This document shows, piece by piece, positions 12 to 55,158 of a DNA stretch of 64,000 nt; the stretch's first letter is position 1; each line of letters begins with the position of its first letter. The DNA is taken from positions 1-64,000 of the IMG/VR virus record IMGVR_UViG_2162886007_000107. One strand, written 5' to 3'. The notes below the pieces were generated by a model. That model was not told the origin of the DNA. It did not search any database and was given only the letters and a program-made list of their open reading frames with translations. A program made the translations under genes and the position numbers.

Positions 12-851
12 TTAGTTAATGCAAAGGTTGTGGGTAACAATCCAGTCTTCTACTACAAACAACTTATCTTCACTGTCGATATTAATGCAGATCGTTTCAG
101 TCGGGTGTTCTTTAACGATGCCAACAATCTTTAAGCGACTTGCTGCAAATCTGGCAATGTCGTCTTGCTCGATGTCTCGATGTCTGGCAGTAACTACATA
201 ACCGTCTTCAACCTTTTGAAGATCAGCAATACCGCCAACACTCCATGCCAGGTGTTGGAAGTTAAGAGCACTTTGTTTGTGCTCGGTAATGTAGCGAACA
301 GTACCGTTGCTTGCTACGCAGCCTTCATTGGTGCGCATGGCTGTAGCAATAGCTCGACGGTCCTGGTAATGAAGTTCTTGTATTTCACGGTTAACAGTAT
401 GACGTTCGCCAATTAGCATCATGGCAATGTCTTTAACAAATTCATCGGCAATACGTTTCTCCGCACCACTGATCTCACCAACCAGAGGGATGGCGTATTC
501 GAACTCATTGAAGTGAGCAATGATGTCGGCGGTGGTAGTAACGTACGGAGCAACACTATTACCCTCGTATACTTCCCAAAGATGCAACGGATGACTTACA
601 GCCTCACGTCCGTCCTCAAAGATGAACTTGTAGCAGTCTGTGACGCCCTGTGGGATTACTTCGGTCACTGAGGCTATGTTACCCATAGGACCAATGACCT
701 TACTGCCCTCACGCAGTTCCTTTAAAGCTAGCCAACCGCCAGGTACTTTTACCTTTACGTTGTACGGCATGGCTTTACCCTTGCTAACCATATTAAGCTT
801 AGGTTCGTTATTAACCTTTAACCCTACCATGGATTTTAAGAGGTTGATCAT
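12..851 (-). CDS. Free-standing intein-like (Hint + degenerate LAGLIDADG) protein, class-3 type
   Basis: GK|AMP at the block A start, HLW in block B, block F Cys (TETICINID), IVTHN in block G; only 26 aa upstream and LCIN downstream; AGGA RBS before the ATG. Confidence 0.8.
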   Translation of the reverse strand: MINLLKSMVGLKVNNEPKLNMVSKGKAMPYNVKVKVPGGWLALKELREGSKVIGPMGNIASVTEVIPQGVTDCYKFIFEDGREAVSHPLHLWEVYEGNSVAPYVTTTADIIAHFNEFEYAIPLVGEISGAEKRIADEFVKDIAMMLIGERHTVNREIQELHYQDRRAIATAMRTNEGCVASNGTVRYITEHKQSALNFQHLAWSVGGIADLQKVEDGYVVTARHRDIEQDDIARFAASRLKIVGIVKEHPTETICINIDSEDKLFVVEDWIVTHNLCIN

Positions 852-1011
852 CGTTAATGTCCTACGGGGAAATTTAATGGTTTATCCATATTAATGTTGT
901 GGTGAAGCGCTACAGCGTTGTACAAAATTGATGCATTCATATTAATTCTTTTTGGTGCTGGAACATCGGCATTGAAACTATTCCCAAAAGCTCTACCACA
1001 AGGAAAGCAGC

Positions 1012-16986: not shown

Positions 16987-19900
16987 TTACCGAACAGGGA
17001 CAGCTTTTGGAGCGGTCGTACTCTTCTTGTTAAGTTCTTCCAACTGAGCAACCTGCTGAGCAGCGATCTGGGCTTGAGTACCACCCGTCTCTCTGATCGC
17101 ATTAACAATTTTCTCAGCCAAGCCATCCAGGTCGATAAGAGGTCCCGGTGCAGCATTTGGGTTGGACCTAGTATCTACTGGTTGTGGTTTAGGCGTGAGT
17201 TTAGGATTGTCCTGGCCGATCTTTTGGAACGTGCCTGGATCAGTATCCATTTGAGGGTTGTTAGTTGAACCACCTTTACGATCAGGCAGAGGGACCGGAG
17301 TATAAGTCTTCTCTGGAGCATTAGCTTCCTCAGTACCACGAGGAACCGCTGCTTCTACTGGAACTTGCGGAGGAGCAGGAGGCTCAGGAGTGAGCTTCTG
17401 TTCTTGTTGTTGGACTGGACCACCACCAGTAGTAGTATCCTGACCATTTTCCGCATTACCACCTGCCGCTTGGTTGAACTTATTCGCAGCTTCTTCGTTT
17501 ACGAAACCGAAGTGGATGTGACCACCCGTTGCTCCAGCAGAAGCTCTCTTGTACTCGTTGAGCACCAGGAAGTCTTTAGGAGTCAAGCCTGCTTGTTGAG
17601 CCAGACCTTTCACGATAGCTACTGCGTAATCACTACTGGCTATTCCATTAGTCAGAGTGAAGTCAAGAGCAAGTCCTTTTGCGTGTTTGGAGTTAGGCTT
17701 CTTCTGCTTATGCCAAGCGTCGTTCAATGCAGTAAACTGTTTGAACGTCTTCACATTAGTCTGAATCAGCTGACACATACGTTTAATGCCAGAATGTACA
17801 TCACCCCCAGCCGTAGTCTCTGCACTCTTCAGACGCAGTCCGGAATTGTCACCAGTCCGGTTAAGAACCAATCCACCACCAGTAGTGTCGTAACCACCAG
17901 ATGGATCTCCACCACCAGTACCACCATTAGCTCCGCTAATAGCGCCACTACCATACCAACCACCAGGAGCGCTGTTATTAGGGGTACCGTATTGGCTACC
18001 ACCACCAGGCGCTGGAGAAAGAGGAGGCATAGATGGAGCACCTCCACCGTACATCCCAGCAGAACCACCGCCACCACTAGAAGTAGCGCTTGGTGAACCT
18101 ACTGAATCCTTGGATGCATCGACACCACTTTCTTCATCAGCTTTCAGAGTTCCTTTACTGAGCTGATCGAGATAGCTTAGGTACAGCTTGTAGCGATCCT
18201 GCATTCCTGGTAGTTCGTTACCTCCGTTCAGACCACGGGCAGAGTATCCAAAATCACCCTTATCGGTGATGGATTGTAACTGCTTCGAGTTCTTAAAGAA
18301 GTTAACTGCAACAGCAGCCATTACGTTAGGGTCTTCACCCAGTTTCTCTGGATTGTTAACCAGATCCACTCCGATCTCACGACCAGTCTTCTCGTAATTA
18401 GCCTTACCAGTCAGTTGGACAAAACCACGTCCACGATACAGGTAGCCATCCCCTGGAGCCAAGTTACCCAGGGACTTCCCTTTAGCACCGCCGTATACAG
18501 CGTTCCCAATTGCTACTTCCCCTCCTGCAACCAAAGCACGAGCCTGATCCAGACTAGTAACTTCCCTGAAGAGTTTCATCAACCGGGTAGGGTCGGTGTA
18601 TTTAAGGTTTTCGACTGTCTTGGAATAACCACCAGTTTCGTAGTTAGTGAGCGCAAGCATTTCTGCAATTGCTCGTGGGTCAGTAAAGCCTTGTTTCAGC
18701 ATCTCACGAATGATCAACTGTTCGGCCAACTTCCGCGGTACCTTAACGCCGGTATCCTTACCTTCGTTACGTTGGACATTCGACATATCCAAGTGACTGG
18801 TATCAGAATCCCCAGTCAATGCCTTGTAACCAAACTGGTTACTAGGAGTACCGTAAACCCCGTTCAAGGTGTACAGGTTACCTGTACCTGCACCTCTTGC
18901 TACGTTAGTTCCGTATTGACCGCCGGCAAGCATGTCTCTACGGCTCTTGTACTGGTCAGCTGTCTGGACGTTTGCGTAGTGAGGAGTATAACCACCACCA
19001 GTTTTGTGCGGGGAGATCGAGTCTGCCCAAGCCTTGGTATTGGTCTTCCCAGCTTCCTTCTCTGGATCTCTGAGTTTGGCTACAGTAGAAGCCTCACCCA
19101 GCATCTTCACCATACGGTCCACTTTATCTGGTTTACCCGGAGAGCTAGTCCCTTCAAAAGGAGAAGCCCGTACGTTCCAGATAGGAGTGATGATTGAATC
19201 GGTAATCTTCGCCTTGGTCTCTACCAGCCCCTTAGCGATCTCAAAGCGAGCAGTAGCGCTCAGGGACTTCCAGACAACACCTGGTTGACCTTTGCGATAG
19301 TTGTTCACCAAGAGCACGTAGTTACTCATTACAGGAGCGAACCTGTCACGGAACCAGCGGCACCATTCATCACCATCCCCGTCCTTCAGACGGAACGCAT
19401 CTTTAAAGAGGCCAAACAGATCGCCAATCTGTCCTTTGAAGACCACCTCTTTACCGTTGAACACAAACAACGACTCGCAGTAGCGTTCCAGTTTCAGAAC
19501 AGCTTCCACACGCCAATGCACATCATCTTCGTTACCATAGCAGGCCAAACGAATCGCCGTAAGGAGACTCACCGCACCTTCATCTGGTAACAGATCTTTG
19601 ATGTAAATGGCAGAGACTTGAGGACCAATTTTGAAGTTGGAATTAAGGTCTTTCAACCGACCATTAATATCATCCAACTCTACCTTGGCTTTGAACCTTT
19701 GGTCACCGGTCATCCCGGAGTCGTAAGGCTGAGCCAATTGTTTCTCAAGCACTTCTTTTCTGGCAGCGAGAGCCACGGCACCTTTCGGAAGATCAATGCC
19801 TTGTTTCTCAGAGTCAGGAGTCTTTTTGTCGATGAACTTCTTCAGTTCTTCCAGATAGTTGTTAACCCGAATGACCGTGTCTTTCTGAGCAAGGATCGGA

Positions 19901-22900
19901 ACAGACTTATCGATCTTCGCCACAATCGAGTAGGGGTAAGGAGCTACACTACTCAATGTGTTGTGCGTCTGGGACGCGACACGGTAAACGTTCTGACTGG
20001 TAGCCTTGTCGTATTCCTCAAGACTACTGATCTTCACGGTGTCGAGGCAAGCCATGTAGGTCAAGAAGACCGGCTTGAAACGACCATTGAACCAGGAGAA
20101 GACGTTAGCAAGCTTAGCCTTATCCTTAGGGTCATCCACAAACAGTCGGAGCACATCGGCCAACGGAGCATCCTTAGACAACGATGCACGACCGTTACCG
20201 ATTACTACAAACTTGGTTAATGCTTTCTCAGCATTAAGAACCTTCTCGGCAAGATCACTCTCTACGTCAGAAATACCGTATTGAGTAAGACGCAGTTTTA
20301 CCTGTGTGCCTTCACCTGCTTTATACAACCTGTACAGACCGTAACCTACAGCACCTACAGCAAGTGCACCGAGAACAAACGGACTAGACAGCAAAGCAAG
20401 TGCACCAGTACCCAACCAAGCAGCACCAGTAAGCAATGCACTACCGGTAGCGGCAGCAGCGGTGCCAGCGACGGCACTCAGTTCAAGACCTGCCAAACCA
20501 GCAGCAGCCGAAGCCAACTGATAACCACCGTAAACAGTAGCGGCTGTGTCAACTGCACCCATTACCGAACTAGTGAGATCTCCATCCTCAACTAACCCCG
20601 ATTCTTGCAGGCTAGCTAGCGCGGTGCCGGTTGCCATGGAAACACCAGCAGCCAAACCGAATTTCTTCAGCTTAGTACCAGGCTTCTTCCGGTGCTCTGC
20701 GCGATCTTCCTTACGTTTCTTCCGAACCTCTGGATGTTCATCCTTATTATCCAGAATGGTATCCATGATGCTACCACCAGCTGCAGTCAGACTCTTGGTC
20801 TTCATGAGGGTAAAGATACCCTTGGCAATAGCGGTAATACCTGTGGTCATCAGGGGCAGGGCCTTGAGACCCAATTGAGCAAACCAGATAACTGGCTTAA
20901 TACCAGACCAAAGTGTCTTGGTGAAGAATGTTCCAATACCAGCAATGGCACTGAAGATCATCCCGAAGATTCCTTTCTTCTCTGGTTTCTCGTTGTTCCC
21001 CATCTTCCCTGTAATAGCTTCGCCAATCTTGATGATGGCTTCGTCACGTTTGTCGTGCTTCTTCTCCTTCTTCTTCTCTTCCTGATCAGCGAGGGAGTTG
21101 AGACGGGAATCCTTCCCATTAACGTGTTCGAGTACTTTTCTGCTGAAGTCGTCTGTACGGTTGTGGTTGTCCACACCGCTGTTAGCCCGCTCTTGTTCCT
21201 TGCGTGCTTCTACGACTTCCTCAGGGGCCTTAGCAGCCACATCTGGGTTAATGCCCTTGTTGTGTTCAGGAGTGGCGGTAACTGCTTCCAGTTCACTGGT
21301 TTCTGGCATCAGTTTGTAACCCCAATGATCCAGCAACAAGTGGTAGATGCGGTCGATCGAGTTGGTGATTGGACTGTAGTCAGCCTTCATCATTGAAGCG
21401 CCTTTATCAAAGGCCTTGCCGCCATACTCAATCGCCTTTTGACGGGCAACCCCCAACTTATCCCACAGCCAACCAGCCGCTTTCTTAGTAGCAGAATTAA
21501 GCTTGTTGATACTTACACCCATCGAAGTAGTCAGACCACGATCGTACTCTTCTTGGGTAATAAGGACATTCCCTTCTCGGTCATAAACCGGACCATCGAT
21601 TTCATTCCAACCATTCAGCGCAACAGGCTGACCATCTTTGCCTTTCTTGTAGTAAGCGCCTCCTGCGAAGCTCTTACCGTACAAGGTAGGTTCGGATGAC
21701 CCTTCCTTATAAACGTTCATCTGATAGAAACGATCAGCGACACGTTTACCCATCGCTTTAAGACGACGAGTTGGATCAAGCCAATCCCAGGCTTTACCAA
21801 TCCATTCGCGCACCTTGTTCAGCCCACCAAGAATTACTTCCTTGTTCTCAGCAGTAAACAGTTTTCCTGCCAGACGTTTTGCACCAATAATCGCACCGTT
21901 GGTTTTATCCACGACACTGTTCTTGATGTCAGCCCAGCTTTCGATAACCTTATCTGTAACCGCATCGTAGTAGTCGCCACGCTTACGTTTCCAGACTTCC
22001 AGAATAGGACTATTAGAATCGGCCTCATAGAGGTCTTCCTCATCCTCAGCCAGCTTAGCCTTAGCCATACCGCGAAGCTTAAGGTAAGAAGCAGCAGCCA
22101 AACCACCACCAGCTACCAACATGGCCGTCTTCGGATCATGCAATGCAACACCGGCCAGACCGCCCAACAAGCCGCCCAAGATGAGAGGTTCGTTACGCAG
22201 GACAGTATCGACGGACTTATTGAAGAACTCCTTGAAGGAGAACTGTTTAATCCGATCAATGATCTTGTCTTTACCCGAGCGCATATCCTGTTCTTCTTCC
22301 TTGGACATCTTCTTGCGAGCAGGAAGACGTTCGTGGATAGCGGTCAGTGTTTGGTTACGGGCATTAGCCAGACGCAATAGATCCGAAGTATCCTTAACCA
22401 GCAGGTCAAGACTACTGTTAACCGGGGTAAGGTCCAAGTTCTTAAGCGATTCCAATCCTTGGAAAGTACTACCAGCAGACTTAAGGCTGTCGGCAATGTC
22501 TTTAATACCGTCGAGGCGTTTGAAGGCTTCGTCAATACCAACGATCTTGACCGGAACAGGGTTACTGTCACTTGGAGCATTGGCGTTAGCACCAGATGCA
22601 GCGACAATAGGACCAACGTACGGAGGAATCTTCAACCCACCAGCACCTGGACCCATACCACGGGTTGGGTAGTCTGGAGTATCTGGAGCAGCATCCATTG
22701 TCTGCTTGCGATCAGGGTTCTTCAGATAGTCCTTGAGGATCTTGTCAATGAGTCCTTCATTGATCTCGTCCGTGTTACCGTACTTGCTCTTGGTGATGAT
22801 ACCGGCTTCACGCATTGCATCGTAATAACCGTTGGCTTTGTACAGGTCGATCTTGTCAGACAAGTCGGTCCCGAACATTGACAGGGAGTTAGATGCTTCA

Positions 22901-24903
22901 GCGTATTGAGTCAGTTTAGACCGAGCTTTCTCACCCTTCATGTAGGTAAGCATCTTGGCCTTAGTAACTTCGTCTGCTTCGGAGAACTTTTCAAGATCCT
23001 CTTCAGAGATGTTGAAGTTAATCATCATCATCTTGCGAATAGCTTCAGCAGTTTTAGCGTCGTGACCCTCAGCCTTCAGATCCATGAAGTTGTAAGGGTT
23101 GAAGCCCAGGTCTTTGTCAGCATCCTTAATAAGCTGGAATGCCAAAGCCTGTTTGTGTGCTTTGGAAAGAGCGTTGCCCTCATCAATGTGTCCAGCCAGG
23201 CTTAGCGCTTGGTTGGCTTGAGTAGAGAACTCGCCGCGACCCAGGATGTTGTTTGTTACTTTCACCAACCGTTGTTTCGAGTTGATGAACTGAGCCTTGG
23301 TATAGTCGTAGGACAATGGCTTGATGTCGTCATTGCCTGTACGGAACTTTTCAAAGCTTTGATGAAGCAAGCTGAACCAACGAGGGATCTCCTCATTCAG
23401 CGTACGTTCAGAACGGCGAGTCCATAGGGACTGTTCGTGGCCGTCTTCCAGAGTACGTTGTTGCATCTGGTAAGTCGAGCCATTAGAAGCCCACATGTTT
23501 TCAAGCACCGCACCTGCAACCTTGTTACCGGTTTTACGGGCAGCCTTGAGAACAACCCATTGAGCCTTAGGCATTGGCTTAGCGTCAGGTGCCAGGGTCG
23601 TAAGGTAATCGTCGTAAGTACTGAAGTCATCGAAGCCAGTACCACCGGTGTAATGCTTAGCCAGTGTGTTGACGATCTGTTCACCATTGTTGGTGACGTA
23701 GCTTGCCACGTTGCCCAAGTCTTCAAGACGCTTGTAGGCATTTTCAGCCCATTTGCTCAGATCAGGGAAACGTTTCTTGAACGCAGCAACGAGTGCTTTA
23801 CCTTTACCGCTCTCCATGGCTTTGGGAAGCTGATTAAGGAAGATACCGGCAGCAGCGTTACCCATGAGACTACCTACGTTGATAGGCATCCCTTCAGTCA
23901 TCTCAGCAACCATACGCAGGCTGCTGGTAACGTCTTGGATAGTGCTCATGGTTTCATTACGAGCGTCAGCCCCAAGTTTATCGTTCAGGAATTCACTGAA
24001 GCCACCGAACTTGCTCTTAACCGTACTGAATACCGACTCACGAATACTTTTACGCATTGCCTGGCTATGCGTGGTTTTCTCGTAGTCCGACATCTGCGAG
24101 TACTTATTAATAGCCCGCAGTTCTGTGATGGTCCGATGTTGAGCCGCTTCCTGGAACTTAAAGAAGGCAGCAGAGGTCAGGTGATGACGAGCAGTAATGT
24201 TGATCAGCAGCGAATCGTTCCGCTGTTGCACACGACGCTGGTAATCGAGCAAGTGTTCCAAGAGCTGGTTGGTACGAACGGTAGCCTGAACAACAGAGTG
24301 CATACTGGCGATCTGACGACCACCAATCTCTGTCATCATGGATACTTGTTCTTTACCTACCGCCTTAAAGGTTTCCCGAGTAAGTGCTCCGTTGGCGTTT
24401 TCCGAGTTGATCAGACTGCTGACTTCTTCGTCAGAAGTTTGTTTCATCTGCTCGTCATTGTCACCAGAATGACTAGAAGCTTCCCAGTCAGAAAAGTCCC
24501 GAGTAGAGAACTCAGTGAGGGCTTCCGGGATTTTATTAGGAACCTTCCCGGTAATAGCTCCGGCTGCCCGCTTAGCCAAATATTGAAGGTCCTGAACAGT
24601 TTCGTAGCTACCTTCTTGGAGTTCCCGCATGATCTCGTGACGACGTTGGTCAAAGTCACGGAGACTACGGAAAGTAGGTGCCCAGGTGCCCGGGAGAACG
24701 CGCTGGAGCGTTCTTATCTTTGCATCGGTGCTACCGGCAGTCCTTTCAACCAGGCCGTCCAGAAAGCCGCTGGTGAAGCTGCTGAAGAAACCCTTCTTTC
24801 CACCGGGATTGTCGAAATCCATATCGAAGCCCATGTCGCCTTCAAACGGATCTGGTCCCCAGTCGCTGAAGTCTGACATGTCTTCAAAATCATTATCACT
24901 CAT
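16987..24903 (-). CDS. Tape-measure / tail-associated peptidoglycan hydrolase (phiKZ gp181 position) with GH19 and M15-like peptidase domains
   Basis: ~2640 aa, helical with hydrophobic Gly/Ala segments; GH19 motifs YETGG and GDGYLYRGRGFVQLTGKANY; SKHAKGLALDF...GHIHF zinc-peptidase motif; divergent from the RNAP genes. Confidence 0.85.
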   Translation of the reverse strand: MSDNDFEDMSDFSDWGPDPFEGDMGFDMDFDNPGGKKGFFSSFTSGFLDGLVERTAGSTDAKIRTLQRVLPGTWAPTFRSLRDFDQRRHEIMRELQEGSYETVQDLQYLAKRAAGAITGKVPNKIPEALTEFSTRDFSDWEASSHSGDNDEQMKQTSDEEVSSLINSENANGALTRETFKAVGKEQVSMMTEIGGRQIASMHSVVQATVRTNQLLEHLLDYQRRVQQRNDSLLINITARHHLTSAAFFKFQEAAQHRTITELRAINKYSQMSDYEKTTHSQAMRKSIRESVFSTVKSKFGGFSEFLNDKLGADARNETMSTIQDVTSSLRMVAEMTEGMPINVGSLMGNAAAGIFLNQLPKAMESGKGKALVAAFKKRFPDLSKWAENAYKRLEDLGNVASYVTNNGEQIVNTLAKHYTGGTGFDDFSTYDDYLTTLAPDAKPMPKAQWVVLKAARKTGNKVAGAVLENMWASNGSTYQMQQRTLEDGHEQSLWTRRSERTLNEEIPRWFSLLHQSFEKFRTGNDDIKPLSYDYTKAQFINSKQRLVKVTNNILGRGEFSTQANQALSLAGHIDEGNALSKAHKQALAFQLIKDADKDLGFNPYNFMDLKAEGHDAKTAEAIRKMMMINFNISEEDLEKFSEADEVTKAKMLTYMKGEKARSKLTQYAEASNSLSMFGTDLSDKIDLYKANGYYDAMREAGIITKSKYGNTDEINEGLIDKILKDYLKNPDRKQTMDAAPDTPDYPTRGMGPGAGGLKIPPYVGPIVAASGANANAPSDSNPVPVKIVGIDEAFKRLDGIKDIADSLKSAGSTFQGLESLKNLDLTPVNSSLDLLVKDTSDLLRLANARNQTLTAIHERLPARKKMSKEEEQDMRSGKDKIIDRIKQFSFKEFFNKSVDTVLRNEPLILGGLLGGLAGVALHDPKTAMLVAGGGLAAASYLKLRGMAKAKLAEDEEDLYEADSNSPILEVWKRKRGDYYDAVTDKVIESWADIKNSVVDKTNGAIIGAKRLAGKLFTAENKEVILGGLNKVREWIGKAWDWLDPTRRLKAMGKRVADRFYQMNVYKEGSSEPTLYGKSFAGGAYYKKGKDGQPVALNGWNEIDGPVYDREGNVLITQEEYDRGLTTSMGVSINKLNSATKKAAGWLWDKLGVARQKAIEYGGKAFDKGASMMKADYSPITNSIDRIYHLLLDHWGYKLMPETSELEAVTATPEHNKGINPDVAAKAPEEVVEARKEQERANSGVDNHNRTDDFSRKVLEHVNGKDSRLNSLADQEEKKKEKKHDKRDEAIIKIGEAITGKMGNNEKPEKKGIFGMIFSAIAGIGTFFTKTLWSGIKPVIWFAQLGLKALPLMTTGITAIAKGIFTLMKTKSLTAAGGSIMDTILDNKDEHPEVRKKRKEDRAEHRKKPGTKLKKFGLAAGVSMATGTALASLQESGLVEDGDLTSSVMGAVDTAATVYGGYQLASAAAGLAGLELSAVAGTAAAATGSALLTGAAWLGTGALALLSSPFVLGALAVGAVGYGLYRLYKAGEGTQVKLRLTQYGISDVESDLAEKVLNAEKALTKFVVIGNGRASLSKDAPLADVLRLFVDDPKDKAKLANVFSWFNGRFKPVFLTYMACLDTVKISSLEEYDKATSQNVYRVASQTHNTLSSVAPYPYSIVAKIDKSVPILAQKDTVIRVNNYLEELKKFIDKKTPDSEKQGIDLPKGAVALAARKEVLEKQLAQPYDSGMTGDQRFKAKVELDDINGRLKDLNSNFKIGPQVSAIYIKDLLPDEGAVSLLTAIRLACYGNEDDVHWRVEAVLKLERYCESLFVFNGKEVVFKGQIGDLFGLFKDAFRLKDGDGDEWCRWFRDRFAPVMSNYVLLVNNYRKGQPGVVWKSLSATARFEIAKGLVETKAKITDSIITPIWNVRASPFEGTSSPGKPDKVDRMVKMLGEASTVAKLRDPEKEAGKTNTKAWADSISPHKTGGGYTPHYANVQTADQYKSRRDMLAGGQYGTNVARGAGTGNLYTLNGVYGTPSNQFGYKALTGDSDTSHLDMSNVQRNEGKDTGVKVPRKLAEQLIIREMLKQGFTDPRAIAEMLALTNYETGGYSKTVENLKYTDPTRLMKLFREVTSLDQARALVAGGEVAIGNAVYGGAKGKSLGNLAPGDGYLYRGRGFVQLTGKANYEKTGREIGVDLVNNPEKLGEDPNVMAAVAVNFFKNSKQLQSITDKGDFGYSARGLNGGNELPGMQDRYKLYLSYLDQLSKGTLKADEESGVDASKDSVGSPSATSSGGGGSAGMYGGGAPSMPPLSPAPGGGSQYGTPNNSAPGGWYGSGAISGANGGTGGGDPSGGYDTTGGGLVLNRTGDNSGLRLKSAETTAGGDVHSGIKRMCQLIQTNVKTFKQFTALNDAWHKQKKPNSKHAKGLALDFTLTNGIASSDYAVAIVKGLAQQAGLTPKDFLVLNEYKRASAGATGGHIHFGFVNEEAANKFNQAAGGNAENGQDTTTGGGPVQQQEQKLTPEPPAPPQVPVEAAVPRGTEEANAPEKTYTPVPLPDRKGGSTNNPQMDTDPGTFQKIGQDNPKLTPKPQPVDTRSNPNAAPGPLIDLDGLAEKIVNAIRETGGTQAQIAAQQVAQLEELNKKSTTAPKAVPVR

Positions 24904-24929
24904 TACCACACTCCTAGTGAGCTTAAGCC

Positions 24930-50119: not shown

Positions 50120-51845
50120 CATGTTTGATAGCTCGCCGGTGACGAACCTCCTCACCGGTGCAGCTCCTGCTACTCAACCCACTGGGTTGAACAAGGGGGA
50201 ACGACGTTCTATCCTCTACATTGAGGACATGTACGACCCAGACATTCACCCGGTTAGCGAAAAAGAGAACTACGTGGTTCCTTTTGAGAACCAGGCGATC
50301 ATCGATGTGGTCAACGGCATGTGGTATCGCTGTATCCATGTGGACACCGAGGGGACCTTGAAGGCTACCTTGGTTCCTCTGGTCTGGCAGAACCCGACTG
50401 ACGTTAACGTGGTTGAGCAGGATTGGTTGTTTGGCATGAAGGGCGGCCCATTCATTGGTGAAGCTCTGCTGGCTATCGATTTCAGTGTTCGTCCGAACGT
50501 AGCACGTGTGGATAGTACCATCATGCGTCCTGGTGCTGACTATGCGCTGCTTTATCGTGGTCAGACCCCTGATGGTAAGGGTCGGATCATTTCGGCCGTA
50601 TACAACCAGAACGGGGACCTCATCACCAATGAGATTCCTACCCCTTTGGCAGAGATTATCGATCGCACCAACTCGATGATCAAAACCACTGGTCAGTTCA
50701 GCGTTACTGAAAACGAGGAAGCCCTACCTAACGGTACTCAGGCTGTCTTGTGCTTCTACGCTACTGGTGGTGTCTTCATTCCTCCGGCCCAACTTGTACG
50801 TGTGCAACATTCTGCATACATGAAGGATCATCGGATCGGGATTAAGTACATCGATCGGATTCAACTCATCTCGCCATGGTTCACCAACAGTAACCAACCG
50901 GATACCTTGGTGCTTCCTATCAACACGCCGATCAGTCAGATCGAATTCCGTGCTGAGAAGATCTACAACGATGGGTCGAGTTCTGGTCCTCTACCAGTAA
51001 ACGGTACTGTGTTCACGCTGCATGGTTTGAACGAGTATCGTCCGTCCTATCCTGGTCAGAGCGCAGAAGTGGTGTTGATTGCCGAGTTGGCTGATGACGA
51101 ACGCATGCTCTTGCCTCAACCTGGTAGTCCGAACTTTGCTCGGGCAACTTACACCATGGTTGCCGGTGCGGTGGAAGGAGCCTACTCTCCACGCGTCTTC
51201 ACTTACCCACAGTGGGATTCGGCGATCAACGGTTACAGTCTTCAGCACTTCCTGTATGACCTGGACCGTAAGGCTTGGGTTGATGTCACTCAACAGGTTA
51301 CGCTCAATGACAAGAGCCCGGCATGGCGTCCAGCCGCTTACGGTACGGCGCAGAGCATGATCTTCAACATCAACCTGCGGGATGTTGCTCCTACCTACAA
51401 GTCGGAGACCTTCATCCAGTACACCGAGATCGTGTTGTATCGCGACCTCAACACCGCAGGCAAGAAGTGGGACGTCAGCTTCGTGTTCGACAAACCTACT
51501 TACGGTGCTCTCAACTTGAAAGCCACCAACAATGGTGCTGCAAGTAAAGCGAACATCCGTAACGAGATCTGGTATCAGAAGGACTGGATCGACGCAATGT
51601 ACTGGGGTGTGTACCCAAGCTACAACGTGTGGGATGAAGACAAGGCTCCTGAACCAACGCACTTCTACCTGCGTCATCCAACCGATGGTCGCAAGTGGTT
51701 GTTCCCGTTGGAACAATGGTCTGAAGATCTGCCAATGCCTATCTCGATGCAGCCTGGTACTACCTGGTACGTTGACTGGGTACGTCGTGATTCGACCGGT
51801 AGTGAATTGCAGCTCGCAACAACTGGCGTTACCGTTACGTTGTAG
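50109..51845 (+). CDS. Virion structural protein (phiKZ gp26 position)
   Basis: 578 aa, beta-rich; directly upstream of terminase. Confidence 0.7.
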   Translation: MAGNMFDSSPVTNLLTGAAPATQPTGLNKGERRSILYIEDMYDPDIHPVSEKENYVVPFENQAIIDVVNGMWYRCIHVDTEGTLKATLVPLVWQNPTDVNVVEQDWLFGMKGGPFIGEALLAIDFSVRPNVARVDSTIMRPGADYALLYRGQTPDGKGRIISAVYNQNGDLITNEIPTPLAEIIDRTNSMIKTTGQFSVTENEEALPNGTQAVLCFYATGGVFIPPAQLVRVQHSAYMKDHRIGIKYIDRIQLISPWFTNSNQPDTLVLPINTPISQIEFRAEKIYNDGSSSGPLPVNGTVFTLHGLNEYRPSYPGQSAEVVLIAELADDERMLLPQPGSPNFARATYTMVAGAVEGAYSPRVFTYPQWDSAINGYSLQHFLYDLDRKAWVDVTQQVTLNDKSPAWRPAAYGTAQSMIFNINLRDVAPTYKSETFIQYTEIVLYRDLNTAGKKWDVSFVFDKPTYGALNLKATNNGAASKANIRNEIWYQKDWIDAMYWGVYPSYNVWDEDKAPEPTHFYLRHPTDGRKWLFPLEQWSEDLPMPISMQPGTTWYVDWVRRDSTGSELQLATTGVTVTL

Positions 51846-51927
51846 TTGTAATTTTATACACTTACGCACTCAGGAGGGGAAACCCTCCTGGGGACGTATG
51901 CCGTTTATATATTCGGGGTATTTCATT

Positions 51928-54900
51928 ATGTCTTTGGACCGCTCTGAAATTCTGAAGATCGCTAAGGATATGCAGAATTACTTGGGGGCGCATTTACTTC
52001 CCAAGAAACTGATCGACGATGAATTGAACCTTGTCGACTCAGATGCCAGGACAGATGACGATACAGTTTTGGCGCATTTTGAAGAAGACAGTCTGCACGG
52101 TATCAAGACTGTTCGTTTTCTGAAAGACTTTGCTCGCTATCGAGCAACAGCTGACACAGAGACAAAGAACACCAGCTTTAAACGTACCGCAGAGATCTTC
52201 CGGCAACAGGGGATTAAGAACTATTTCTTCCTGTTGCAGTTGAACAACCCGATGCTCAAAGGTGTTGACCCTTACTCGGAGAATTTGACTAACGAGCAAG
52301 TTCTCTGGATTGCTGAGGAATGCCGGACCAACTTCTGGTACTTCCTTCGTGAGGTTTGTAAGGTTCGTGCTGACCGGTTCTTCCAAGCTAACCGCGGCAA
52401 CATCAGCTTTATCTGGAACTATCTGAACCACATCACCAGTTACATGATCATGCCTCGGCAGCAGGGTAAGTTCCAAGAGAACGAAACTCCTGTACGGATC
52501 ATTCCTCGTGAGATCGTTGGTAACACTAATCCTGCTGACCATTGGACAACTATTGGTCAGTTGCGCATCGGTGATCAGGTAGTAGACCATCACGGTGAGG
52601 CTAGTACTGTTATCGGTGTTCACCCACAAGGTAAAAAGCGTCTTTACAAGATTACCTTCAGTGACGGTCGTTCTACCAATGCTGGTGCTGAGCACTTGTG
52701 GTTAATTGGTGATCATTCGGATACTCTCAATGGAGAATGTATCTGGGACGAGAAGACCACCGCTGAATTGCTTTACAAGTGGCAGAACGGTGTCAAGATT
52801 GAACTGCCGTTGATCAAGCCTGAGGACAACTGCAAGAACAACTTCATCATCAAGCCTTACATCATGGGCCTGATGTTTGCAAACGAAGTTGTGGATGGAA
52901 AGATCTACGTAGATCCGATCAAGGAGATCACGGCTAATGTTCTGCGTCATGGCACACCTACTCATCTGACCTATCGGGTTGATAATGGTAGTCAGTACCT
53001 GGAACGGGCTGATAAATCGCCTCTGACCCTTAATCAGGAAGCTGGTCTCCCAGCAGACTACCTGGAAGGTTCTTTGCAGGACCGTAAGGACCTCTTAGAG
53101 GCGTTTCTACACAAATCTCGCACTACCTCTGAGGGTCGGTTCCTACCATCCTCTAACAACGTTCTAATGACTCAGATTCAATATCTGATTCGTGGCTTGG
53201 GCGGTACTGCCAAGAAAGTTGAAGGTGGGTTGCAGTTCACTCTGCAAGGCGATGCTGGTAACGAACTCTTCATTTCCGATATCAGTTATTTGGTCGATGC
53301 GGATTGTACTTGCATTGAGGTGGATAACGAGGAACATCTGTATTTGGCGGAAGACTTCATTGTCACGCACAACACAGTATCAGTTCAGGTAATTAACTTC
53401 TGGCTGACGTATATCAACGGCCGTGGTTACAAGACTCATGTCATTACCTTGAAGAGTGATAACCGTGCTCAGTTCATTGACGCGGTTAAACGGATGAGGG
53501 CCTGTGTTCCTAAGTATTTGGTTAACTCCACGTACAAGGACAAGGACGCAGGTACTTATCTAACGTATAAAGCTTTTGGTGATGAGCTGGTAAACACCTT
53601 AACCATTAGCGTTCCTCAGATCGGTAAGGATGCCGCGGGGGACATGGGTCGTGGTTTGACGGTAGGGACAACCTTCCTCGACGAACCGGCCTACATTTCG
53701 TGGATCGAGGAAATCGTCAACGGCGCGATGCCTTCTGCTTTGACAGAGATGGAGTTGATGAGGGCCAACGGGTTGCCGTACGGGATTGGTTACATTACAA
53801 CACCAAACACAACTCTGCACCCATCTGGCGACTACATGTTCAAGAAACTCATGTCTGCTACCGAGTGGCGTGAGAAGTTCTTTGATTCGTACAGTGAGAG
53901 TCATCTCAAAGACAGGCTCATTCGGGCTTCTCCAGAGAAGACGACCAGTCCGGCGATCAGCATGGTTTACAACTACATGCAGCTTGGCAAGAACAAGGAC
54001 TGGGTGAAGCGAACCATTGACGATCTGAAACTTAGTTTGTCTAAGGCTAAGATCGACTTGCTGTTGATGTGGGTTGAAGATGGCGAGAACCGATTGTTTG
54101 ACGACCTTACTCGTGAAGCGATCAGTAACGTTAAACGACAACCAGTGTGGAGTAAAGAGTATCGGAACAGTGGGTTGTTCATGGACTTCTTCTGTACCCA
54201 GGAAGAGTTAATCCGAATGGGCAAGAAAGAGTACAACGATCACTTCCTTATTGGGGTCGATACCTCCTCCGCTATCAACAAGGACGCCTGTACGCTCATC
54301 ATTCGCTCTATGAAGACTGGTAAGGTCATTGGCGTAGGTCGCTATGCCCTGGCTATGCTGGACGACGTTACAGCGATTATTGTGGACATGCTGGAAACCT
54401 TGCAAAACAGTCTGTTGGTCATTGAACGTAACTACGCTCACCACATGATCGATAGTCTGCTGATCCTTCTGCCTGCAAAAGGCATGGATCCATTCATGCG
54501 TATCTACAATCAGGTTTACCAAAGCCCGATTGACCATCAGAAAGAACTGGAGCTAGTGCAGTCAACCAAGTTCGCCTACAGAGATAAGAACTTCTACCTG
54601 AAGCTCAAGCATCTGTTTGGTTTCGTTACCACTGCTAACTCTCGGAAGATTCTGTATGGCTTGATTCAAGAAGCCGTGGCTGTGACTGGTTATGGTATCA
54701 ATTACGACAAGTTGGCTGATGAACTGATTAACCTCAGGACTAAGGGCGACCGTATTGACCACGACGCGAAACAGCACGATGACTTGGTAATCGCATGGCT
54801 GCTCACTTACTGGTTCATTAAGCTGGGTGCTAACAAACCGTTCTACGGAATCATGGGTGCGTTGGCTCTTAGCGATACACAGAACCTGTTGGATGCTGGC

Positions 54901-55158
54901 AAAGAAAGTAAACAGGCTCCGATGGATCCGAGTATCAAACTGTTCTTTGAACAAGTAAGGTTGAAAATCAATAACCTTACCGAGGAGCTGCTGCGTACTA
55001 CGGACAACATCCTGGCACTGCGGTTGGAAGCAGAGATTATGAAGTACTCTAAACTCCTGCCCCCAGAAACTGCCAAGCTGCTTACTATCGATACATTGCT
55101 GGAAAAGGCGCGTCTCGAAAGAACGCGTCGAGTTATGGAAAACAGAAGAGCAGCATAA
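51928..55158 (+). CDS. terL: Terminase large subunit, intein-containing
   Basis: Walker A PRQQGK|T split by an intein, Walker B FLDE, YITT coupling motif, nuclease motifs GVDTS, IERN and HDD. Confidence 0.95.
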   Translation: MSLDRSEILKIAKDMQNYLGAHLLPKKLIDDELNLVDSDARTDDDTVLAHFEEDSLHGIKTVRFLKDFARYRATADTETKNTSFKRTAEIFRQQGIKNYFFLLQLNNPMLKGVDPYSENLTNEQVLWIAEECRTNFWYFLREVCKVRADRFFQANRGNISFIWNYLNHITSYMIMPRQQGKFQENETPVRIIPREIVGNTNPADHWTTIGQLRIGDQVVDHHGEASTVIGVHPQGKKRLYKITFSDGRSTNAGAEHLWLIGDHSDTLNGECIWDEKTTAELLYKWQNGVKIELPLIKPEDNCKNNFIIKPYIMGLMFANEVVDGKIYVDPIKEITANVLRHGTPTHLTYRVDNGSQYLERADKSPLTLNQEAGLPADYLEGSLQDRKDLLEAFLHKSRTTSEGRFLPSSNNVLMTQIQYLIRGLGGTAKKVEGGLQFTLQGDAGNELFISDISYLVDADCTCIEVDNEEHLYLAEDFIVTHNTVSVQVINFWLTYINGRGYKTHVITLKSDNRAQFIDAVKRMRACVPKYLVNSTYKDKDAGTYLTYKAFGDELVNTLTISVPQIGKDAAGDMGRGLTVGTTFLDEPAYISWIEEIVNGAMPSALTEMELMRANGLPYGIGYITTPNTTLHPSGDYMFKKLMSATEWREKFFDSYSESHLKDRLIRASPEKTTSPAISMVYNYMQLGKNKDWVKRTIDDLKLSLSKAKIDLLLMWVEDGENRLFDDLTREAISNVKRQPVWSKEYRNSGLFMDFFCTQEELIRMGKKEYNDHFLIGVDTSSAINKDACTLIIRSMKTGKVIGVGRYALAMLDDVTAIIVDMLETLQNSLLVIERNYAHHMIDSLLILLPAKGMDPFMRIYNQVYQSPIDHQKELELVQSTKFAYRDKNFYLKLKHLFGFVTTANSRKILYGLIQEAVAVTGYGINYDKLADELINLRTKGDRIDHDAKQHDDLVIAWLLTYWFIKLGANKPFYGIMGALALSDTQNLLDAGKESKQAPMDPSIKLFFEQVRLKINNLTEELLRTTDNILALRLEAEIMKYSKLLPPETAKLLTIDTLLEKARLERTRRVMENRRAA
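52471..53373 (+). mobile_element. Class-3 intein (301 aa) in terminase Walker A, with degenerate LAGLIDADG domain
   Basis: Removing it restores RQQGK-TVSV; HLW, block F Cys (CTCIEV), VTHN|T. Confidence 0.92.

Follow-up and report, generated by a model that had tools for sequence, protein, structure and literature searches.

The locus and its genes

The window analysed here comprises the first 64,000 nucleotides of IMGVR_UViG_2162886007_000107, a 236,430-bp jumbo-phage record. Near its start the minus strand carries an open reading frame of 279 codons that begins at ATG, with an AGGA ribosome-binding site 8 nt upstream (Table 1). It encodes a 26-residue leader, a complete 249-residue class-3 intein sequence and a four-residue tail, Leu-Cys-Ile-Asn, that starts with Leu at the +1 position. 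The gene is preceded by a 449-aa gene, a DUF7194 gene and a 532-aa divergent gene.

Table 1. Features of the orphan intein gene and of other loci mentioned in the text. Residues are numbered from the start codon of the ORF; L numbers denote loci in related phage contigs and G000:C1 the full phage record.
Feature	Position (strand)	Description
Whole ORF	12..851 (-)	279 aa plus stop; extein-less (orphan) class-3 intein gene
Leader	774..851 (-)	26 aa; stub of the helicase N-extein; first residues resemble the helicase N-terminus, last residues (KGK) are the remnant of the Walker-A P-loop
N-terminal Hint part	552..773 (-)	Residues 27-100; Ala27 (nt 773-771) is intein residue 1; block B with His90 (nt 584-582) and Trp92 (nt 578-576)
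Middle domain	141..551 (-)	Residues 101-237; half-deleted LAGLIDADG remnant; second motif ends Asn175-Glu176-Gly177; Glu159, Arg165, Ser204, Gly206 and Gly207 invariant in a 16-sequence alignment
C-terminal Hint part	27..140 (-)	Residues 238-275; block-F Cys255 (nt 89-87); block-G Thr273-His274-Asn275 (nt 35-27; Asn275 nt 29-27)
Tail	12..26 (-); coding nt 15-26	Leu-Cys-Ile-Asn plus TAA; probably the last four codons and stop of the former helicase gene
Upstream block	852..887 (-)	36 nt, almost fully conserved in four phages; contains the RBS (AGGA, nt 863-860) and, on the other strand, the start of a divergent small gene
Divergent gene stub	877-894 (+)	Five codons (MVYPY, then a stop); 115-131 aa in close relatives (L026, L028, L020)
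Record ends	1-11 and G000:C1 236330-236430	T8 at both ends; joined, an A-run and a hairpin terminator between two convergent genes
Giant ORF	16987-24909 (-)	2640 aa; not examined
Large terminase gene	51532-55158 (+)	Listed ORF probably starts too early; likelier start at 51928
Terminase intein	52471-53373	301 aa, in the Walker-A motif after PRQQGK; first residue Phe, +1 Thr
DEAD-like helicase	G000:C1 about 90876-92417 (L010:1066-2607), outside the window	513 aa; intact, empty P-loop site (GGGK followed by T)
Gene following the slot in relatives	L020:10865-11944, L026:1388-2482, L028:4825-5913, L025:10865-11863	332-364 aa, function unknown
Weak paralogue of the preceding gene	G000 100198-101220	In the window's phage

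The ORF is complete and is not cut by the end of the contig. The stop codon lies inside the contig, a DNA contig from another run extends past position 1, and relatives carry the same ORF in mid-contig. When the two ends of the record are joined, the ORF is followed by the A-run, the hairpin and a convergent small gene, so no C-extein is encoded there; the record is probably a circularly permuted complete genome opened at an arbitrary point.

Relationship to class-3 inteins

The observation underlying the original prediction, a free-standing class-3 intein at residues 27-275 with its Trp-Cys-Thr triad intact and no +1 nucleophile, is confirmed, and its coordinates are correct. A search against intein profiles had been proposed as a check. 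The PHROG families that match are intein-bearing terminases, helicases or helicase loaders and primases, whereas Pfam (LAGLIDADG models included) and NCBIfam searches of the ORF gave nothing useful. An AlphaFold2 model built on 16 homologues has a mean pLDDT of 85, with residues 1-24 disordered (pLDDT about 30). The predicted structure superimposes on PI-SceI over 249 residues (Z 20.5) and on the solved class-3 DnaB intein of M. smegmatis, MsmDnaB-i1 (6bs8; Z 19.1, rmsd 1.7 Å), and matches bacterial intein-like (BIL) and Hedgehog Hint domains at Z 15-16. A profile of the family finds 6bs8, the M. chimaera DnaB-1 intein (6rix) and gp41-1 as the best solved sequences, with Ala1, the block-B His-x-Trp (His-B10, Trp-B12), the block-F Cys (Cys-F4) and Thr-His-Asn (including Thr-G5) all aligned; Ala27 aligns with Ala1 of 6bs8 and 6rix, so that no Ser, Thr or Cys occupies intein position 1. 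Lacking both a host protein and a +1 Ser, Thr or Cys, the product is by definition an intein-derived protein and not a working intein. Autocatalytic cleavage or splicing was not assayed.

The original prediction also stated that the sequence aligns well with the phage's own terminase intein, which is overstated. The two are only 23% identical (E 7e-10), and helicase inteins are much closer; the idea that the ORF is a copy of the terminase intein was rejected. An exhaustive profile-free search found about 6,500 relatives, nearly all of them inteins inserted after the Gly-Lys of a P-loop and followed by Thr or Ser. The closest are of two kinds: short proteins of 265-298 aa with the same architecture (P0002, P0004, P0005, P0041 and P0151-P0158, P numbers denoting homologous proteins), and the intein of P0003, a 947-aa SNF2-like helicase (43-48% identity by different methods).

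Genomic context and origin

The gene order of the window recurs in every related contig. At the same slot a 925-950-aa SNF2/RapA-like helicase with this intein in its P-loop is found in L025, L032, L034-L039 and L043, while an orphan is found in the window and in L016-L021, L026, L028, L030/31, L040/41 and L042. A scan of IMG/VR with the neighbouring gene contributed 14 of these loci, nine with the intein-bearing helicase and five with the intein alone. None of the 24 loci examined has an intein-less helicase or an empty slot, and the flanks are homologous across all loci. At least 20 phages carry the extein-less form. The presence of orthologues inside a full-length host gene had been named in advance as a finding that would refute the original prediction, and this condition is fulfilled: the intein is not one without a host protein in origin.

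The stubs point to the helicase gene. Orphan leaders begin like the helicase N-terminus (M-F/L/I-N-L-F/L...), and in the window's clade the leader ends with the P-loop remnant. The tail, stop codon, A-run and hairpin of the window resemble the last four codons (Leu-Ser-Ile-Phe), stop, A-run and hairpin of the L032 helicase gene. No SNF2 extein was found anywhere in the phage genome. The leader shares the five residues LKVNN with the phage's own 513-aa DEAD-like helicase, which was first read as a relic of that gene; close relatives have LKVTS or LKVTG instead and synteny points to the SNF2 helicase, so the match is probably partly chance.

Orphan and embedded forms are interspersed on maximum-likelihood trees of the inteins rooted with more distant helicase inteins. 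Starred branches force at least three changes of state, and up to six separate losses are implied if exteins cannot be regained. An AU test rejects a single orphan clade (log-likelihood difference 46.9, p = 4e-7). The count of independent losses rests on the intein tree alone, and the direction of change, extein loss rather than gain, is inferred from the stubs and the outgroup and has not been proved. Different clades carry different stubs: 26-aa leaders and x-Cys-Ile-Asn/Asp tails in the window's clade, leaders of 17 to about 41 aa and Gly/Ser-Asp/Glu-Cys tails in the P0004 clade, 9-17-aa leaders and Ser-Phe-Thr/Ser in the P0002/L040 group, and no tail in L018, L019 and L042. Among helicases with at least 54% identical C-exteins, all have the length that goes with the intein, and intein-less alleles (680-713 aa) appear only in more distant phages such as Klebsiella phages Miami and YC1.

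Selection on the orphan gene

Evolution of the catalytic residues had likewise been put forward as a test of the original prediction, with neutrality counting against it. Against the three closest orphans, P0151-P0153 (84, 72 and 73% identity), dN/dS is 0.066, 0.054 and 0.115 with dS of 1.5-3.3. These values are rough, since synonymous sites are near saturation, but they are as low as those of the neighbouring genes (0.06-0.20 for the same genome pairs). The four sequences share the same leader and tail type, so all of this divergence accumulated in the orphan state. The frame is open in every orphan seen. The catalytic set is intact in 20 of 23 orphan rows tabulated; L019 lacks His-B10, Cys-F4 and His-Asn, and L042 and L018 lack the terminal Asn, yet the body is kept in all three.

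The C-terminal Hint part is the most conserved segment. The leader is the least constrained at the protein level (pN close to pS) but has unusually low pS, indicating constraint at the nucleotide level that continues into the conserved block upstream. The leader DNA may therefore be kept partly for regulatory reasons, although this is an inference. Within the helicase-bearing clade, omega is 0.055 and 0.07 for the exteins, 0.043 and 0.049 for the two Hint parts and 0.12 for the middle domain. Scaled to the neighbouring genes, the N-terminal Hint part evolves about 3.6 times faster after orphaning, while the middle domain and the C-terminal Hint part keep about the same rate, a comparison that rests on few genomes and near-saturated sites.

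The middle domain

The original prediction described the LAGLIDADG blocks as decayed, and this part is indeed reduced. An hhalign comparison with P0257, a full-size LAGLIDADG intein (Pfam LAGLIDADG_3) inserted at the same site of a related helicase, aligns the family end to end (probability 100%) and shows that about 90 residues of the first half-domain are missing while the second motif and its sheet are kept. The model has only one alpha-beta-beta-alpha-beta-beta unit, so the two helices and two four-stranded sheets of a full DNA saddle are not present. An acidic residue precedes the Gly of the second motif in the window's clade and, as Asp, in the P0004 clade, but the position is Ser in all helicase-embedded relatives and in the P0002/L040 orphans. 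An active two-site endonuclease is therefore unlikely, whereas DNA binding or nicking cannot be excluded. The equivalent of the first motif is ambiguous, and the alignment does not decide whether both motifs would end in an acidic residue. A homodimer prediction, run to see whether two half-domains could pair, gave no answer.

Interpretation

The most likely explanation, held with fair confidence, is that the ORF is what remains of an SNF2/RapA-like helicase gene that carried a class-3 intein in its Walker-A P-loop. The analysis itself shows that both exteins have been deleted in place down to the two stubs, that the gene's start and apparently also its last four codons, stop and terminator are kept, that the phage no longer has that helicase, that the leftover intein is maintained as a stand-alone protein under strong purifying selection, and that extein-less and embedded forms are interspersed, most simply through several independent losses. 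There is no experimental evidence for expression, cleavage or DNA binding, and reads of RNA libraries yielded only fragmentary contigs of a strain variant that cover part of the gene, could be carried-over DNA and do not prove transcription.

What the protein does is a matter of inference. Splicing is taken to be impossible because +1 is Leu and there is nothing to join. The established class-3 mechanism (PMC3196547) starts with attack of Cys-F4 on the N-terminal junction and ends with cyclization of the terminal Asn, and neither step needs a +1 nucleophile. In this view Cys255 would attack the Lys26-Ala27 bond and hydrolysis of the thioester would remove the leader, while cyclization of Asn275 would remove the tail, yielding the same free 249-aa intein that the embedded version releases. 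The selected activity would then lie in the body (Hint fold plus half a LAGLIDADG domain), as suggested by the lack of leader conservation as a peptide, the three orphans that lost junction residues but keep the body, and the equal constraint on the middle domain in both states. Most probably this is sequence-specific DNA binding, and perhaps nicking, used in competition between co-infecting phages or in regulation, but its nature is not established and it may be something else. If only the body matters, the near-perfect retention of splice residues still needs explaining; they may simply be needed for folding.

A further, tentative reading is that the intein body had acquired a job of its own, independent of the helicase, while still embedded. 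This would explain why the exteins are often missing among the 24 loci (apparently lost several times) but the intein never is, and why the middle domain is equally constrained in both states. The helicase gene would have been merely the intein's vehicle, and the orphan ORF a self-maturing precursor of a new kind of phage factor, for example a DNA-binding or anti-competitor protein, and the first exapted intein known outside yeast HO.

Among the alternatives, an active free-standing homing endonuclease is unlikely, though the least unlikely of them. It would cut intein-less SNF2 helicase alleles in co-infecting relatives and be copied into the break with its flanks, replacing the helicase and explaining both its spread and its scattered distribution. 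The LAGLIDADG ancestry, the acidic residue in two clades, the intein-less alleles of distant phages and the homologous flanks are in favor, and free-standing endonucleases that home without an intron are known in T-even phages. However, one half-domain is missing, no intein-less allele occurs among the 24 close loci, the acidic residue is absent in the P0002/L040 orphans and all embedded relatives, and the different stubs fit separate deletions better than the spread of a single allele.

The interpretation in the original prediction is only partly supported. A free-standing gene that cannot splice, keeps the whole class-3 catalytic set and is under strong purifying selection may fairly be called domesticated. 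That it serves to release the 26-aa leader as a bioactive peptide, or to pass it as a thioester to another molecule in the manner of BIL or Hedgehog domains, is unlikely. The catalytic residues are highly conserved, a thioester on Cys255 is the expected first intermediate, and the short tails of two orphan clades (the window's clade, and P0004, P0154-P0158 and L030) each keep an unexplained Cys, which could be a chance leftover of the helicase C-terminus or a thioester acceptor. Leaders, however, range from 9 to 43 aa, are hardly alignable between clades, are disordered and show pN close to pS, their conservation is at the nucleotide level and overlaps the start region of the divergent gene, and three orphans lack a working junction. 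Nothing tested bears on the suggestion that the protein acts as a decoy.

A decaying pseudogene that has simply not yet been deleted, for which embedded orthologues, the inability to splice, the Arth_1007 precedent and the splice residues lost in L019, L042 and L018 could be cited, is very unlikely and largely refuted by the low dN/dS accumulated in the orphan state. The open frames, the conserved RBS block and the repeated retention of the intein with no locus having lost it also count against it, and phage genomes purge useless DNA quickly.

Comparison with known systems

Class-3 inteins in P-loops of phage and bacterial helicases (MsmDnaB-i1, MchDnaB-1, Dra Snf2 and mycobacteriophage Bethlehem DnaB) share the Hint fold, Ala at position 1, the catalytic residues and insertion after the Gly-Lys of a Walker-A motif, but the protein described here has no exteins to join and is kept as a gene of its own. 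The Arth_1007 intein of Arthrobacter sp. FB24 (Tori and Perler 2011, PMC3196547) is likewise of phage origin, with only short exteins (52 and 14 aa) and no host gene. It lacks His-B10 and Cys-F4, is inactive and is regarded as a pseudogene, and it is a single case, whereas here the catalytic set is intact and selection maintains a family of 20 or more members in which orphan and embedded forms are interspersed. Yeast HO endonuclease, a domesticated VMA1-type intein and relative of PI-SceI, the best structural match of the present model, is also free-standing and retains the Hint fold and a LAGLIDADG-derived domain recruited for its own function. HO has a complete two-motif endonuclease domain and an added zinc finger and does not self-process; here half of the endonuclease domain is missing, the splice residues are kept and no activity is known. 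BIL and Hedgehog Hint domains also cleave or transfer rather than splice, but they sit at the end of a functional cargo protein that they release or modify, whereas the flanks here are vestigial stubs and the sequence groups with true class-3 inteins and not with BIL or Hedgehog domains.

Literature searches for free-standing, orphan or extein-less inteins in phages found no description of this family; a recent survey of actinophage inteins reports non-canonical architectures but, as far as its abstract and section list show, not this one. Inteins are usually seen as selfish passengers that survive only because they splice cleanly out of an essential host protein. Here the passenger outlives the host gene under selection as strong as that on neighboring phage genes, and the extein-less state appears to have arisen more than once. 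If confirmed, this would be a second, independent case of intein domestication after yeast HO and the first in a virus. It would also provide a natural class-3 module that should perform N- and C-terminal cleavage without ligation, which could be useful for protein engineering. Such ORFs are easily mislabelled helicase or terminase from intein-only similarity.

Other features of the genome

The gene of unknown function that follows the slot in the closest relatives and in some helicase-bearing phages is absent at this place in the window's phage, which has only the weak paralogue listed in Table 1. The phage's DEAD-like helicase has no intein, although its orthologues in Aeromonas phage PS1, Vibrio phage VP4B and Pseudomonas phage EL carry related class-3 inteins at the same P-loop site.
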